Sequence record: LR756500.1
Direction: 5' to 3' (one strand)
DNA: 64,000 bases
Both the position numbers and the translations under genes were made by a program. This document shows positions 21,660 to 47,662 of the stretch, piece after piece. Numbering within the stretch: the stretch's first letter is position 1; the number at the start of each line of letters is the position of its first letter. Below the pieces are notes generated by a model. It searched no databases, was not told the DNA's origin, and was given only the letters and a program-made list of their open reading frames with translations.

Positions 21660-22090
21660 ATAATACCTAGAAATTGAAACCGTTCAAAAATTGAATACTC
21701 AAAAGTATTCTACCGTTTATTTGAATAAAAATTCGGCAAAAAAGGTCATGATTCCGAGATTAAAGTGCAGAAATACATCCGAATTAGCACTTAACTTGAT
21801 GAGGTACAAGTTAAACCCATGTGATATAGCTCATTTGCAAAGCTGTACTGACGTCTTTTCATATGGAAAACCCGTATGAAATACATAGTAACTGACATCT
21901 TAAATATTTTATAATCTATATAATTCATAATATCAAAGAACGGTTTCAACTTCATCATCGGTATCCCACTAAGTAGGGAAACTTTTTAACTTTTCGACAG
22001 TTAACATCGTTTACATGTTTCGCTAGTAACCTACGACACACTGATGCGTTCAGTAGAGACGCCATTAATTAACCTTAATGGGAAGGTTAT
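21660..22090 (-). ncRNA. Candidate large structured ncRNA of unknown family
   Basis: No credible ORF, raised GC, many hairpins, 16-bp long-range helix 21670-21685 / 21938-21953. Confidence 0.5.
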
Positions 22091-22675
22091 AATAAATTAA
22101 TATTATGTGTAAATATAATAATTAAGTTTTACAAATTAAAATATTTATGATCTTTTTTCAAAATAATTTTAAATGAAAATTTAATTAAATATTTATAAAA
22201 AATGAAAAGGGTTATTATCATTTAAATCATCAGTATAAAGATTTTTATCATCAACTTTAACATTTTCTTCAATATTTAAATCCTCTTCTGAAAATTCATC
22301 TTCTTTTATATTTTCATCAATATGATATAAACCGATAATACAATCTTCTCTCTTTCTTCTATATGATTCAAAATAATCAGAATCTACAGGTATACATTTA
22401 TGAATTATATCTTCAGTTATAAGTGTATAACTTGATTCATCATAAACTACACCAGGATCTCCAAAATAATAACCTACTTTACCTTTTTCTTTATATTGCA
22501 AAACTCTGGGACCTGTTCTTCCCATTCCATCTGCATCATACACATATAAAGCATCTTTTATTAAAATATATTCTGCACTTACGAATTTAAATTGAATTTC
22601 ATTATAAACTTCAGGATAAAATTTCTTTAAATATTCAGATTGAAATTTTAATTTTTTTCTAATATTTCAGTATGA

Positions 22676-23292: not shown

Positions 23293-24186
23293 TTATGCTA
23301 TAAATACCTTTTCATTATTTTTAAATACTAATTTTCTTCCTTTAATCCAACCTTTATTTATCCATTCATAAACTTCTTCTTTTTTTACTCTTATAGATTT
23401 CTTCTCTTCTAAATTATGTATCCAACACTTTCCATACTGACTATTTCTTGAACCTAATTGAGATATTTTATTTGCTTTACTTATTTTTTCTCGATGCTCT
23501 TTAGCTAATTTACGTCCTATTTGAATTCCAACTAATTCACCTGATAAATATCTTGGATCATCTACATTTACCCAAAATTTATTTCCGTCTTTATCTTTTA
23601 CACTTGTTTTATGTTTCATTATTCCAACTAATTCACTACTTAAAACTCTAGAATCATTTAAACGACATCTAATAATANNNNNNNNNNNNNNNNNNNNNAA
23701 AGAAAAATATTTACTTTGATATTGATATTCACCTGATTTTAATTTTATATTATTTACATCACATTTAAAAGAATTTCCTTCTTTATCTATAACATTGACT
23801 TTTCCTATACTTATAGGGAAATATTCATTATTATATCTTGAATCACTTTTTAACATTAATGTTTTATTATTTTTTTTATCTTTAACTAATACCAATCCTT
23901 TAGTATTCCAACCATAACCACCTAACATAATATTATAAACATCTTTTCTTTTAACAAACTCTTCATTTACTAACTCAGCCTCTTTAGCAAACATCTCTTC
24001 AAATGTATCAAAATTATAAAGAACTATACGTTCAAAATTGTCTATTCCATACTTCTTAAATGCCTTATGCAAATAAGTACCTGATCCCATATAACCATCT
24101 TCCAACTTATCCGTCTGATGACAGCCTATATAAATTTTATTGTTAATTTTATTAATAATTTCATAAACTATATTATACTTACTCAT
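23293..24186 (-). CDS. GIY-YIG (Seg-like) homing endonuclease; contains a 21-N gap at 23678-23698
   Basis: NIVYEIINKINNKIYIGCH, YMGSG, YNIMLGG, repeated VKDK motifs. Confidence 0.8.
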   Translation of the reverse strand: MSKYNIVYEIINKINNKIYIGCHQTDKLEDGYMGSGTYLHKAFKKYGIDNFERIVLYNFDTFEEMFAKEAELVNEEFVKRKDVYNIMLGGYGWNTKGLVLVKDKKNNKTLMLKSDSRYNNEYFPISIGKVNVIDKEGNSFKCDVNNIKLKSGEYQYQSKYFSXXXXXXXXIIRCRLNDSRVLSSELVGIMKHKTSVKDKDGNKFWVNVDDPRYLSGELVGIQIGRKLAKEHREKISKANKISQLGSRNSQYGKCWIHNLEEKKSIRVKKEEVYEWINKGWIKGRKLVFKNNEKVFIA

Positions 24187-24243
24187 ACCAATGATATATT
24201 TTATTTTATATATCATTAATAGTTCGAGTAAATTATTCGAGGA

Positions 24244-25213: not shown

Positions 25214-25285
25214 CTGGGATGAAGGGAATCGAACCCCTATCGATGCGTTAACAGCGCACAGCTCGGACCATTGAGCTACATCCCA
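25214..25285 (-). tRNA. tRNA-Asn(GUU)
   Basis: Anticodon arm GTGCG-CTGTTAA-CGCAT, G73. Confidence 0.92.
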
Positions 25286-25369
25286 ATATTTATTTTCAAT
25301 GAACTAATATGTAAATATAATAAAAAAGTAATTAATAAAAAAATCCAGCATGTCAAAGAACCATTTAAA

Positions 25370-25398
25370 CGAAAAAATCCAACTTGTTAGGTTGGATT
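25370..25398 (-). terminator. Intrinsic terminator of attenuator 2
   Basis: AATCCAAC-CTAACAA-GTTGGATT then T-run; boxA-like GTTCTTTGAC at 25352-25361. Confidence 0.75.
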
Positions 25399-25424
25399 CT
25401 TTAATATTATTTATATTGTTAACA

Positions 25425-25496
25425 TTAAGCCCAACTCGATTGGATGATATTATTATCATCTCTTCTATTGTCTATTATGTTAACTAAATTAATCAT
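25425..25496 (-). CDS. Leader peptide 2, MINLVNIIDNRRDDNNIIQSSWA (23 aa)
   Basis: Manually translated; between promoter 25512-25540 and terminator. Confidence 0.75.
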   Translation of the reverse strand: MINLVNIIDNRRDDNNIIQSSWA

Positions 25497-27416
25497 GTTC
25501 AAAAATTTATTATTATATGCAAATATAATAAAATGTTTCGCTTTGGTAATAAATTTATTTTTAGATATCATTTAAATTAGATTTACCTTCGCAGTTATCA
25601 GATTTAGCAACCATATTATCTCTTTTATCAATTATAGATTTAATTGATTCTTCTAATTTAAGACATTCAAATCCTTTTGATCCGCAACCTACATATTTAC
25701 AACAATTTTTACCTTGTCCTATTTTACAAACCTCTTTTATATGATTATTCATTTTTAATAATTTTAAGTTGTTGTTCAATATAATTAGCTATTTCAATAC
25801 ATTCTTCATCTTGTATCCAATAAAAATCTATTCCATTAATAGTTACTGAAAAATCAGAATCAGTTGGATCAAGAACTACATTTGTTAAACTTACAACTGG
25901 ATTGTGTCTTTCTTTATCTTGCTTTTCCCATCGTTCTTCAAATTTACTAATAACAGAAGGAACTTTGCTTATTTTATTTAATTTTTTTAATGCCTCTGAT
26001 TGATTTTCTTTTGGTTTTATAGGCCAATGATTATCATAATTAAAAAATTCGGTTGATTTTCTAGTAAGTCCATGAGTTATTTTTAATTCTAAACCACTCC
26101 AATCTGTAATTTTATTATAATTTTTTAAAATAAAAATTTTAGCACTATTAGCAACTATAACTAATGCACTAGTATATTTACTATATGTTTCATAAAAATC
26201 TTTATCAGTCCAAAATTCTGTAGATTTATAAGCATTCTCAAAATCTTCTTCTGATGTAAAACACGGAACAAATGAAGGTGAAAAATTACTCATTAATTTT
26301 ATTCGCTAAATTAGTCATTAAATTATTCATTTCATTTGTTGGTTCTTTACTACCATTTTTAAGTGCTTCTAATTCTTCATCAAATATAATAAATGGATCT
26401 TTTGTTATAGATGGAAATCCATTTGCTATTCCTTCTGCATCGAGTTCATTTATATTTAATAAAAAATCTTCAATAATTAATGGACATCCTTCATACTGTA
26501 AAATAGGATAAAAAGAAGCTTCTATATAAACAGTATCTCTACGTAAAACTTTTAAATCTTTAAAAGATTCATGATTATTTATTTGTTTAGTTATTTCTTC
26601 TTGTTGATCAGACCATGATGTAGGACCATCTTTTAATAAAAGTTTAATAACTTTATATTCTTCATCCATCCATACATATCTAAGTCTTCCTAACAATGGA
26701 TATTTTTTTTCAGGATCATGAGGTTGAGCCCAATTTATACAGGCTAATAAATATTTTCCTAGAGGATGTGGTTTAACAACCATATTAAACATTGACATAA
26801 TAATTTATTTTAAATTTATTAAACTGTATGTAGTATTATCAGAATTTAAAAAATATCCACTATTAAAAAGTTTAAGAATATTTTCTTTTTTAATATCTAT
26901 TATAATATTATGATCATTATATTTATACATTTTATAATAAATAGAATCTATATCATATATTAAAAATAGCTGTCTATCATTTTTAATTAAACATAAAAAT
27001 GTTCCAACTGGAATATTATACTGTGTATAAGTTACTAGTTCATTATTTTCATTAAACGATTCACCTAAAAATCTTATATTAGATTTATGTAATTCTTTAG
27101 CAGTTGGACCGCAAGATATAAATAAAACACCAACTAAAAGTATTAAAATATATTTATTCATAATTAAAATATCTAATGTTTCGTTTATAATGAATTTTTT
27201 TAACCATTTTTGATAATAAAAGATATTGTATAATATTTTTATAATTTTTATAATGAGCATTACCATCAAACATATAATGACTATTATTTAAGCATTTTTT
27301 ATTTTTGTCTATAATTCGTTTTACATCTCTCTGTATTATACCTTCAGGATTTTTTTTAATCTCCTCATACACAATCATAGCTGCTTCAAAATTTTCTTTT
27401 CTTAATTTTGGTATCA

Positions 27417-46672: not shown

Positions 46673-47662
46673 TTATTGCACATTAAATCCTATATTTCCT
46701 TTAGTTCCTAATTGACCATTTGCTTTTAACTTTCCATTCATCATTGATTTTATTTCATTAACAGCATCTTTAAAATCATATCCTAAAACAAATACAGATA
46801 AAAGAAGTTCTTTTAAATGATCTAAAGTAAATCCTTCGGATACTTTAACCCATTCATTTAAATTAATATTTTTTAATTCTTCTATACTTAATTTTTTTTC
46901 TATATAATATTTTCGTACTTCTTTAGAAGGTAATCCTATTTCATATCTTCTATCAAATCTTGAAGGTCTATTAGCTATTCTTTCTTCTAATTTTTCTTGA
47001 TAGTTTGTAGTTGCAATAGTTATAATATTATCTAACTTATTACTTCCATCTAATATTTGTAAAAGTTTTGTTAACAACGCTTTATCAACATTAATAAAAT
47101 TATCGATATCTTCTAATATAAGAATAATTTTTCTATCTGGTTCTATTTCTCGTAAAGGAACCATTATTTTATTAAAGTCGTATATGTGATCAGGTTGAGT
47201 TATATTGATTATAATACCTTTATGATCGTTAATTAAATTTTCACTTACTAATTGAATTAAAGAAGTTTTTCCACAACCTGGATGTCCATATAATATAATT
47301 CCACGTTTATAAATAAATGAATGATTATTATATTTGTTTTGACTTGTCCAGAATTTTTTAATATCTTCTAAAATCAATTCAAAATTATTATCTGGCAATC
47401 TAAGTATTTCTTCTGTTATAATATTTCTTTTTCTTAAGAAGAATTCATCTCTTCTAGGATCATATTCTAACTCATAAAATCCGCTTGGTAATTTTTCTTC
47501 GGTTTTTCCAGTTGGATAAAAAGCATTTCCTATTACACTCCATTGTACAACACCACTTTTATATTCAACACCATCATCATCAATATTAATTTCAGAAATA
47601 TTAATGTCTTCTTCATCTCCTAAAATATCACTTAAAGATATTCTTTTATTTTTGCTGCCCAT
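46673..47662 (-). CDS. AAA+ ATPase
   Basis: GHPGCGKT, LILEDID, TTNY, NRPSRFD. Confidence 0.85.
   Translation of the reverse strand: MGSKNKRISLSDILGDEEDINISEINIDDDGVEYKSGVVQWSVIGNAFYPTGKTEEKLPSGFYELEYDPRRDEFFLRKRNIITEEILRLPDNNFELILEDIKKFWTSQNKYNNHSFIYKRGIILYGHPGCGKTSLIQLVSENLINDHKGIIINITQPDHIYDFNKIMVPLREIEPDRKIILILEDIDNFINVDKALLTKLLQILDGSNKLDNIITIATTNYQEKLEERIANRPSRFDRRYEIGLPSKEVRKYYIEKKLSIEELKNINLNEWVKVSEGFTLDHLKELLLSVFVLGYDFKDAVNEIKSMMNGKLKANGQLGTKGNIGFNVQ

Follow-up and report, generated by a model that had tools for sequence, protein, structure and literature searches.

The control of amino-acid operons by leader-peptide transcription attenuators, such as those of E. coli trp, his, thr, leu, ilvGMEDA, and pheA, depends on a short promoter-proximal ORF that holds a run of regulatory codons. 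Several amino acids can share one leader, as in thr and ilv. An intrinsic terminator follows, a segment near the stop codon competes for the terminator's 5' arm, and an upstream segment holds that competitor in untranslated RNA. The E. coli pheST attenuator uses a leader of Phe codons to govern phenylalanyl-tRNA synthetase, and so gives feedback on the supply of charged tRNA. T-box riboswitches also decide between a terminator and an antiterminator upstream of translation-related genes, but they do so by binding uncharged tRNA directly, without translation and by means of conserved structural motifs. In rRNA operons, boxA in the leader and spacer serves as a NusB/NusE site in antitermination. 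Finally, the T4 tRNA gene cluster is interspersed with homing-endonuclease genes (segB) and is transcribed together with protein genes, but no leader-peptide attenuator for it was found in the literature searched.

Here I consider a stretch of 64,000 nucleotides (the window) from the 429-kb genome of a huge phage, record LR756500.1, in which a short ORF and an intrinsic terminator stand in front of tRNA genes. The codons of the ORF are those read by the tRNAs encoded downstream, which suggests that the phage probably makes more of a tRNA when ribosomes run short of it. No such control of tRNA genes turned up in the literature searched. In contrast to the amino-acid operon leaders, the genes downstream are tRNA and tmRNA genes rather than those for biosynthetic enzymes, the element lies in a phage (probably one infecting Bacteroidota), the leaders are longer (20-24 codons) and mix up to seven or eight amino acids that mirror a tRNA array, and a boxA-type site follows the terminator. 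In contrast to pheST, which controls a synthetase for a single amino acid in a cellular genome, the product is the tRNA itself.

The leader ORF and the tRNA genes downstream

The leader and the tRNA genes lie on the minus strand. A promoter, P1 (25540-25512), consists of CGAAAC at 25540-25535, a 17-nt spacer, and TATAAT ending at 25512. It belongs to a recurrent class (class B): the motif GAAAC-N16-18-ATAWAAT occurs 28 times in the genome against 4.7 expected, and 18 of the copies are intergenic and lie on the gene strand, usually 18-35 nt before a gene start. The first ATG after P1, 15 nt past the -10 box, opens a leader ORF of 23 codons plus TAA (25496-25425, with the stop at 25427-25425) that encodes MINLVNIIDNRRDDNNIIQSSWA, containing five Asn, three Asp, AGA AGA, ATA ATA, and five Ile in all. 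Its start context lies at the 92nd percentile of all ATGs and within the range of real gene starts in this phage, which uses no Shine-Dalgarno sequence. The frame stays open upstream to an ATG at 25571 (48 aa), but that ATG has a poor start context. The ORF is followed by an intrinsic terminator (25402-25372), composed of AAAGAATCCAAC, a 7-nt loop, and GTTGGATTTTTT, with a stem of 8-12 pairs and a U6 run, at about -8.7 kcal/mol.

The first gene after the terminator is tRNA-Asn(GTT) (25285-25213), as judged by ARAGORN and by an Rfam tRNA match of 65.1 bits. There follow tRNA-Asp(GTC) at 23291-23214, also found by both methods, tRNA-Arg(TCT), which reads AGA, at 21597-21525, and a tRNA with anticodon CAT at 21028-20954. 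HNH and GIY-YIG genes are interspersed, much as segB is in T4. The initial annotation counted two tRNA-Asp genes, which is only partly right. The second is an interrupted, 137-nt tRNA-like gene (24380-24244) with anticodon GTC at 24282-24280 and an internal insertion, and it gives only a partial Rfam tRNA match of 23.7 bits. The same annotation took the CAT tRNA to be of the Ile2 type, which is unproven: comparison by BLAST with annotated phages was uninformative, and the acceptor pairs C4-G69 and C5-G68, which seem to fit the TilS determinants, provide no more than a lead.

The match between leader and tRNAs is far beyond chance. Twelve of 22 codons belong to the set read by the tRNAs lying between this module and the next one (binomial p about 0.001), and 0 of 1276 small ORFs of the genome reach that share. 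Codons 6-16 (25481-25449: Asn, AUA, AUA, Asp, Asn, AGA, AGA, Asp, Asp, Asn, Asn) are 11 consecutive codons of this kind, supposing that the CAU tRNA reads AUA. This is the only run of 11 or more in all six frames of the genome, where the maximum in called genes is 7, and it is also the longest N/D/R/I run genome-wide.

Sister modules in this genome and in other phages

A genome-wide scan for a promoter, short ORF, and terminator found only four such modules outside of called genes (eight other hits lie inside called genes), and all four lie directly upstream of tRNA or tmRNA genes. The class-B promoter is conserved in each. Besides the module described above (module N), module H (57043-56854) has a promoter, a 24-codon leader (56985-56911), a terminator, and boxA, followed by tRNA His-Glu-Val-Trp. 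Module T (33153-32987) has a promoter, a 20-codon leader (33104-33042), and a terminator, followed by tmRNA. Module A (3885-3692) has a promoter, a 22-codon leader (3819-3751), a terminator, and boxA, followed by tRNA-Ala and onward; 15 of its 21 codons are cognate to the downstream tRNAs (p 1.5e-5). All four leaders are 20-24 codons long, where about 13% of ATGs would open 20 or more codons by composition, and their start contexts are normal. The spacing from stop codon to terminator is 26-33 nt.

When each leader is scored against each tRNA set, the values for the true pairs are 10, 6, 12, and 15, while those for all other pairs are 0-5. The true assignment scores 43, the best of 24 permutations (the next best scores 34), with a Fisher combined p of 3.5e-7. 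The codon match of the tmRNA module is nonetheless weak by itself (p about 0.08-0.18). Ten more modules of the same build were found in seven other phage contigs, again with matching leaders. Five are in LR756501.1 and LR745206.1 (Fisher about 1e-9 to 1e-10; rank 1 of 120 permutations; antiterminator p 0.007-0.13), and five are in IMG/VR contigs found through the boxA pattern alone (Fisher 1.3e-5).

The conservation of this particular leader is another matter, since no close relative of the phage was found. No relative of the 48-aa or 182-aa neighboring ORFs turned up in viral contigs or in the phage collection apart from LR756500.1, which is identical to the window outside of the 21 masked bases (23698-23678) and so carries no variation. 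Homologues of the upstream 182-aa protein (37-52% identity) sit in contigs without synteny and without tRNAs downstream, though one contig has no DNA on file and a 453-kb JGI record could not be searched. Scans of viral contigs with promoter patterns gave only chance hits.

A proposed attenuator that senses tRNA supply

I propose, from sequence and folding alone, that the region is a ribosome-mediated transcription attenuator placed in front of a phage tRNA cluster. RNA polymerase would start at P1, and the leader would be translated. If one of the charged tRNAs that read codons 6-16 is scarce, the ribosome would stall within that run, opening the pairing between segment 1 (CAAUAGA, 25470-25464) and UCGAGUUG (25439-25432) and leaving segment 2 (GUUGGG, 25435-25430), 2 nt before the stop codon, free to pair with UCCAAC of the terminator's 5' arm as it emerges. 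The terminator then could not form, and transcription would run on into tRNA-Asn, the two Asp genes, and possibly further. If supply is good, the ribosome would reach the UAA and cover GUUGGG, and the transcript would end near 25372. Untranslated RNA would also terminate, because segment 1 holds segment 2, as is predicted by the minimum free energy (MFE) fold of the free leader. The net effect would be negative feedback that matches phage tRNA output to translational demand. The initial annotation also took the region to be an attenuator, and that interpretation is supported by the sequence. I regard the model as probable, although regulation itself is inferred, because no RNA data exist for this phage; the sequence occurs only in DNA runs from a groundwater study and in one soil run.

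The antiterminator is weak at this locus. GUUGGG and UCCAAC form 6 pairs (-6.2 kcal/mol), not significant alone as judged by shuffled sequences (p 0.067). The pairing does behave as required in folds of nascent RNA, forming when a ribosome sits at codons 2-16 and blocked when the ribosome is at the stop. The case is clear in module T, where a 10-nt copy of the terminator 3' arm overlaps the stop codon (p below 0.0005), and in module A (p 0.006), but not in module H (p 0.11). At equilibrium the terminator is favored by about 7 kcal/mol, so the choice must be kinetic, and the region as a whole folds no better than shuffled sequences (z -1.2). The terminator itself finds some support in a comparison with the tmRNA module, where a C-to-U change in the 5' arm is matched by a G-to-A change in the 3' arm. 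A 7-bp hairpin (GAUGAUA/UAUCAUC, 25460-25443) inside the ORF, covering codons 13-18 and present in MFE folds, is a possible pause hairpin. It explains the rare ATC ATC pair, which is the complement of GAT GAT.

Between the terminator and the next promoter lies a boxA-like element (25361-25342; GTTCTTTGAC...TGGA) that matches the extended consensus at 15 of 20 positions. GTTCTTTGR occurs 6 times on this strand against 0.9 expected, once after each of the four terminators, and the extended box also lies directly before tRNA arrays in other phages. The conserved box, GTTCTTTGA(C)GTATTGRAAT, is the same sequence that lies about 30 nt upstream of 23S rRNA in five rRNA-operon loci of two Bacteroidota genomes (a Crocinitomicaceae MAG and a Fluviicola MAG), after the spacer tRNAs where the locus reaches them. 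This is the position of the spacer boxA in E. coli. The 59 genome matches are mostly Bacteroidota, which provides a clue to the host of this groundwater phage. I therefore read the box as a boxA-type antitermination site, here preceding phage tRNA arrays and coupled to a putative leader-peptide attenuator. The alternative view that GTTCTTTGA is part of an extended -10 promoter is rejected as a general reading: in the tmRNA module the box abuts the mature 5' end. A search of the literature with the box sequence returned only primers and siRNAs.

The initial annotation cautioned that a second promoter-like box lies after the terminator and that the Arg and CAT tRNAs are about 4 kb away, and both cautions are correct. 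Promoter P2 (25335-25305, core ATTATATTTACA at 25321-25310) belongs to a class (class A) with 103 copies allowing at most one mismatch, 59 of them intergenic and nearly all oriented with the next gene. In the model, P2 gives a basal input independent of the attenuator. Since boxA lies upstream of P2, only read-through transcripts carry it. The Arg(TCT) and CAT tRNAs lie 3.7-4.3 kb downstream, behind another class-A promoter (22119), a boxA-like box (21941), and a weak hairpin at about 21690.

More broadly, it is somewhat more likely than not that tailed phages with large tRNA arrays, probably infecting Bacteroidota, regulate their tRNA and tmRNA genes with a family of such attenuators, each leader spelling out, codon by codon, the tRNAs it controls. 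The phage would thereby measure the decoding capacity of the host and top up only what is missing, in a tRNA-homeostasis circuit coupled to an rrn-type boxA antitermination site. Why phages carry tRNAs and how they use them is an open question. A switch of this sort would show that tRNA output is tuned to the decoding state of the infected cell, which could follow from codon-usage mismatch, host shut-off, or tRNA-cleaving defenses, and it would extend attenuation to tRNA and tmRNA genes. The leaders would also serve as labels of tRNA transcription units and of decoding identity, for example of the CAU tRNA, offering a purely computational way to find such units, and possibly to assign ambiguous tRNAs, in uncultivated phages.

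Other explanations

It is possible, though unlikely, that the attenuator depends on ribosomes but senses general translation capacity, any stalling or uncoupling, rather than specific tRNAs, or that it works with the opposite sign, so that stalling favors termination. The tmRNA module has the strongest alternative pairing but only a weak codon match, and tmRNA responds to stalling of any kind. Furthermore, in three of the modules from other phages the competing segment lies 5-9 codons inside the ORF, which does not fit the classical geometry, and the sign of regulation is not certain there. However, a general sensor has no need of a specific match, module by module, between leader codons and downstream tRNAs, and in the present module the competitor abuts the stop codon, as in classical attenuators. 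Slightly less likely still is the view that P1, the ORF, and the terminator form a separate small gene, encoding a micro-protein or a small RNA, and that the tRNA cluster is expressed only from P2 and other downstream promoters. P2 is indeed a genuine copy of the commonest promoter motif, the terminator is thermodynamically dominant, and cassettes of a terminator followed by a promoter are common in this genome. But this view does not explain why such units occur only before tRNA and tmRNA genes, why the codons of each ORF match its own downstream tRNAs, why a copy of the terminator arm lies at the stop codon, or why boxA lies upstream of P2. Modules H and A have no class-A core between terminator and tRNA, and no homologue of the peptide was found.

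It is very doubtful that the region is merely an ordinary gene boundary, a terminator for the upstream operon followed by a promoter, with a chance ORF in between. The genome is 25% G+C, so Asn, Ile, and Asp codons are common, and the ORF frame is open back into the end of the upstream gene. Chance is rejected, however, by the empirical tests described above, a promoter placed 130 nt before a terminator makes no sense at a plain boundary, and the pattern is replicated in other phages. Slightly more remote is the idea of a sensor at the level of RNA, in which the codon run pairs directly with tRNA anticodons, as the T-box specifier does, without translation. The run is complementary to the anticodons of the downstream tRNAs by construction, but there is no T-box-like scaffold, no T-box or other riboswitch match appears at E up to 5, and the ORFs are kept open with good start contexts and a narrow length range, which implies translation. 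Nor does any Rfam leader family match at 25560-25286, even at E up to 5. Only module A gives a Thr_leader match, and it is below threshold (30.5 bits against a gathering score of 55). A sequence resembling a T4 late promoter, TATAAATA, is found at 25415-25408, as expected by chance at this base composition.

A leader and terminator before tRNA genes

The window is part of a 429-kb phage contig and is identical to LR756500.1, an uncultured 462-kb phage, apart from 21 masked bases. A masked N stretch (23678-23698) lies inside the ORF of a GIY-YIG homing endonuclease (23293-24216). The genome is about 25% G+C and uses the standard code at about 90% coding density. All of its 27 tRNA/tmRNA genes sit in one 58-kb island on the minus strand, interspersed with small ORFs and homing-endonuclease genes. 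Gene starts have no Shine-Dalgarno sequence, only A-rich, G+C-poor leaders.

Read on the minus strand, the upstream gene ends at 25561 and is followed by a promoter-like site, here called P1, consisting of CGAAAC, 17 nt, and TATAAT (25540-25512). Fifteen bases later an ATG (25496) opens a 23-codon ORF that ends in TAA at 25427-25425. Next comes a terminator at 25402-25372, with a stem of 8 to 12 pairs, a 7-nt loop, and a U6 run, and then tRNA-Asn, which starts at 25285. The initial annotation was correct in its residue counts for the leader, in its tandem AGA and ATA codons, and in the complementarity between GTTGGG and TCCAAC. Of the tRNAs it listed (Asn, two Asp, Arg, and a CAU tRNA of the Ile2 type), Asn, one Asp, Arg(TCT), and a CAT tRNA are clear calls, while the second Asp is a 137-nt tRNA-like gene (24380-24244) with anticodon GTC and an internal insertion.

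In an A+T-rich genome, Asn, Ile, and Asp are common, so nulls were drawn from the genome itself. The relevant codons were defined in advance as those read by the tRNAs lying between this module and the next module downstream: Asn, Asp, Arg-TCT, CAT taken as an AUA reader, and Arg-ACG. Twelve of 22 leader codons fall in this set, against 5 expected (p about 0.001), and none of 1276 ATG-started ORFs of 18-30 codons from all six frames reaches that share, with or without the AUA assumption. Codons 6-16 form an unbroken run of 11 set codons. In all six frames of the whole genome this is the only run of 11 or more, and the longest run in 128,000 codons of called genes is 7. At the amino-acid level, the 13-residue N/D/R/I run is the longest in the genome.

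Correspondence between leaders and tRNAs

A listing of the larger intergenic gaps showed the same build three more times: before tRNA His-Glu-Val-Trp (module H, leader 56985-56911), before the tmRNA (module T, leader 33104-33042), and before tRNA-Ala (module A, leader 3819-3751). All four share the promoter motif, which occurs 28 times genome-wide against 4.7 expected, 18 of the copies being intergenic and usually 18-35 nt before a gene start. A mechanical genome-wide scan for a -10 box, a first ATG, an ORF of 8-45 codons, and a hairpin with a T-run returns only these four outside called genes. The leaders are 20-24 codons long, whereas by base composition about 13% of ATGs would open 20 codons, and their start contexts fall within the range of real starts.

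The main result is a matrix in which each leader is scored against each module's downstream tRNA set. It is strongly diagonal, with 10, 6, 12, and 15 on the diagonal against 0-5 off it. The true assignment scores 43, the best of 24 permutations, with the next best at 34, and Fisher's combined p is 3.5e-7. The Ala leader, for example, uses Thr, Leu(UUA), Pro, Gly, Gln, Tyr, and Ala codons, and the tRNAs that follow are Ala, Leu(UAA), Pro, Tyr, Gln, Gly, Thr, and Gly. The tmRNA leader matches only weakly.

Then there is the evidence from other phages. Two other huge phage records that share tRNA similarity carry the same build on the strand of their tRNA arrays. In LR756501.1 (locus L021), a leader rich in Ser/Lys/His/Phe/Trp (L021:232-327) precedes Trp-His-His-Phe-Lys-Ser, a leader rich in Leu/Asn/Ile (L021:12566-12634) precedes five Leu tRNAs, which are followed by Ile, Cys, Asp, Asn, and Tyr tRNAs, and a leader rich in Gln/Met/Ile (L021:33509-33589) precedes Met-Gln-Gln. 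In LR745206.1 (locus L020), a Tyr/Glu leader (L020:18645-18731) precedes a Glu/Tyr array and an Ile/Gly leader (L020:19697-19780) precedes Ile(TAT)-Gly-Met-Gly. Each leader is followed by a strong terminator. The combined p is about 1e-9 to 1e-10, the true assignment ranks 1 of 120 permutations, and complementarity to the terminator 5' arm has shuffle p 0.007-0.13.

A further, unbiased sample came from scanning viral contigs not for leaders but for a conserved box that follows the terminators (considered in the next section). Five contigs have a leader ORF, a terminator, the box, and a tRNA array, and again the leaders are enriched for the tRNAs that follow (Fisher 1.3e-5). Two of these leaders, in the IMG/VR phage contigs L022 (L022:2417-2524) and L031 (L031:2942-3049), are clearly related to each other, although the contigs differ in G+C (0.29 and 0.37). 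Both have a W-x-D-D-A-E-E core, both precede Asp-Asp-Glu-Glu-Val tRNA arrays, and both hold the same copy of the terminator arm inside the ORF.

A proposed attenuator and a boxA-like site

For each module, the nascent RNA up to the terminator loop was folded, both free and with 30 nt masked by a ribosome. In all four modules the terminator's 5' arm pairs with a segment (segment 2) that overlaps or abuts the leader stop codon. That predicted pairing disappears when the ribosome sits at the stop and persists when the ribosome is held at earlier codons. In module T the competing segment is an exact 10-nt copy of the terminator's 3' arm. Against dinucleotide shuffles the pairing is significant for T (below 0.0005) and A (0.006) but only marginal for the module before tRNA-Asn (0.067) and for H (0.11). 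In three of the foreign modules the competing segment lies inside the ORF rather than at the stop, so the sign of the response may differ there.

In the module before tRNA-Asn, the free RNA also shows GUUG of segment 2 held by CAAU in codons 9-10. A 7-bp hairpin is formed by GAU GAU AAU AAU AUC AUC, which explains the two rare ATC codons and could serve as a pause hairpin. At equilibrium the terminator wins by 6.5-9 kcal/mol in three modules, including this one, and the decision would therefore be kinetic. This module and the tmRNA module look paralogous: a C-to-U change in the 5' arm is matched by G-to-A in the 3' arm, while segment 2 keeps GGG and pairs through a G-U wobble.

The box after the terminator, GTTCTTTGR, occurs six times on the minus strand of the window against 0.9 expected. 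One copy follows each of the four terminators and another lies before tRNA-Arg(TCT). Its extended form, GTTCTTTGA-N-GTATTGRAAT, also precedes tRNA arrays in the other phages. A scan of one genome per prokaryotic species found 59 matches, mostly in Bacteroidota and often at contig ends. In the Crocinitomicaceae and Fluviicola loci examined, the box lies about 30 nt upstream of 23S rRNA, after the spacer tRNAs where the locus reaches them. That is the position of the spacer boxA of rRNA operons, the NusB/NusE antitermination site, and the E. coli boxA sequence, which appears to be GCTCTTTAACAA, is similar. I therefore read the box as a boxA-type site that protects the untranslated tRNA array from premature termination. 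Together with the lack of Shine-Dalgarno sites, it also points to a Bacteroidota host. In the module before tRNA-Asn the box (25361-25342, 15 of 20 positions) lies between the terminator and a second promoter, P2. Only transcripts that read through the terminator carry it, which argues that read-through happens and matters.

I propose that this module is a functional leader-peptide attenuator feeding the tRNA cluster. The interpretation offered in the initial annotation is supported and I consider it likely, though regulation is inferred from sequence and folding, with only DNA sequencing runs, mostly from groundwater, containing the sequence. The main alternatives are that the element is a general stalling sensor or that it is a stand-alone small transcription unit. 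P2 (core 25321-25310) belongs to the commonest promoter motif of the genome, with 59 intergenic copies, and tRNA-Asn therefore has an input independent of the attenuator. The tmRNA module has the same arrangement, whereas the His and Ala modules have no such core between terminator and tRNA. Moreover, Arg(TCT) and the CAT tRNA lie 3.7-4.3 kb downstream, beyond two homing-endonuclease genes and a further class-A promoter at 22119, and read-through from P1 might or might not reach them. The Leu leader of LR756501.1 likewise matches tRNAs 7-9 kb away. The CAT tRNA has C4-G69 and C5-G68, which may be the TilS determinants, but its identity as Ile2 could not be confirmed. The statistics hold without it.

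Mechanistically, this would be classical ribosome-mediated attenuation. The closest case in logic is the pheST attenuator, a leader-peptide attenuator that controls a translation-machinery gene. The element is not a member of any curated leader family, there being no Rfam match at this site and only a sub-threshold Thr_leader match at the Ala module, and it is not a T-box. What appears to be new is the link that such an element would make between phage tRNA genes and a demand sensor, in a build that is widespread. Full-text searches for leader peptides or attenuation combined with phage tRNA genes found nothing, though prior work in closed journals cannot be excluded, and a 2020 survey paper on huge phages does not mention attenuators, leaders, or terminators.

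Other features of the tRNA island and genome

Two promoter motifs organise the genome, with examples at window 29171, 30039, and 59788 on the minus strand. Class A is AAACT-N-ATTATATTTACA, whose 59 intergenic copies often lie directly after a terminator, and class B is CGAAAC-N17-TATAAT, which is enriched in the tRNA island. Between the class-A promoter at 22119 and tRNA-Arg(TCT) lies a non-coding stretch of about 450 nt with higher G+C (22100-21600, minus strand). It holds a boxA-like box at 21941, has no Rfam match, and may be an unknown structured RNA. A long perfect inverted repeat with arms of about 20 nt (47718-47650, minus strand) lies immediately after a class-B promoter and before ORF 46673-47662, and produced spurious microRNA-type Rfam hits. 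A repeated element of about 45 nt begins with the GAAAC promoter half and continues CCAATATAAAATTTACAG...GGCCGGTGAAATG. It has six copies, at window 8525 (minus strand) and at genome positions 83548, 155357, 171347, 253773, and 269433.

The interrupted tRNA-like gene with anticodon GTC (24380-24244) is not alone. Several tRNA-like genes on the minus strand, the others at about 46460-46379, about 46060-45982, and about 48910-48725, carry internal insertions of 60-130 nt, and three of the insertions share the 16-mer CTCWAAGTYATTACAG (3 copies against 0.03 expected). They may be a new kind of tRNA intervening sequence or decayed genes. One tRNA (52314-52244, minus strand) was missed by ARAGORN but found by Rfam (46.6 bits), and by eye its anticodon loop reads GCA (Cys).

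An ORF resembling PTH2 (peptidyl-tRNA hydrolase; 49837-49382, minus strand) behind a class-B promoter reads M-K-stop(TAG) and then continues open for about 110 codons, and a suppressor-type tRNA with anticodon CTA (48720-48652, minus strand) lies 1 kb downstream. Expression of the gene may depend on TAG read-through. Finally, the same 17-mer (ATGATATATAAAATAAA; 25172-25156, 24216-24200, and 55124-55108, minus strand) forms a hairpin over the start codon of three genes, an HNH endonuclease, a GIY-YIG endonuclease, and a third ORF of unknown family, with 3 copies against 0.13 expected. This resembles the translational occlusion known for T4 homing endonucleases.
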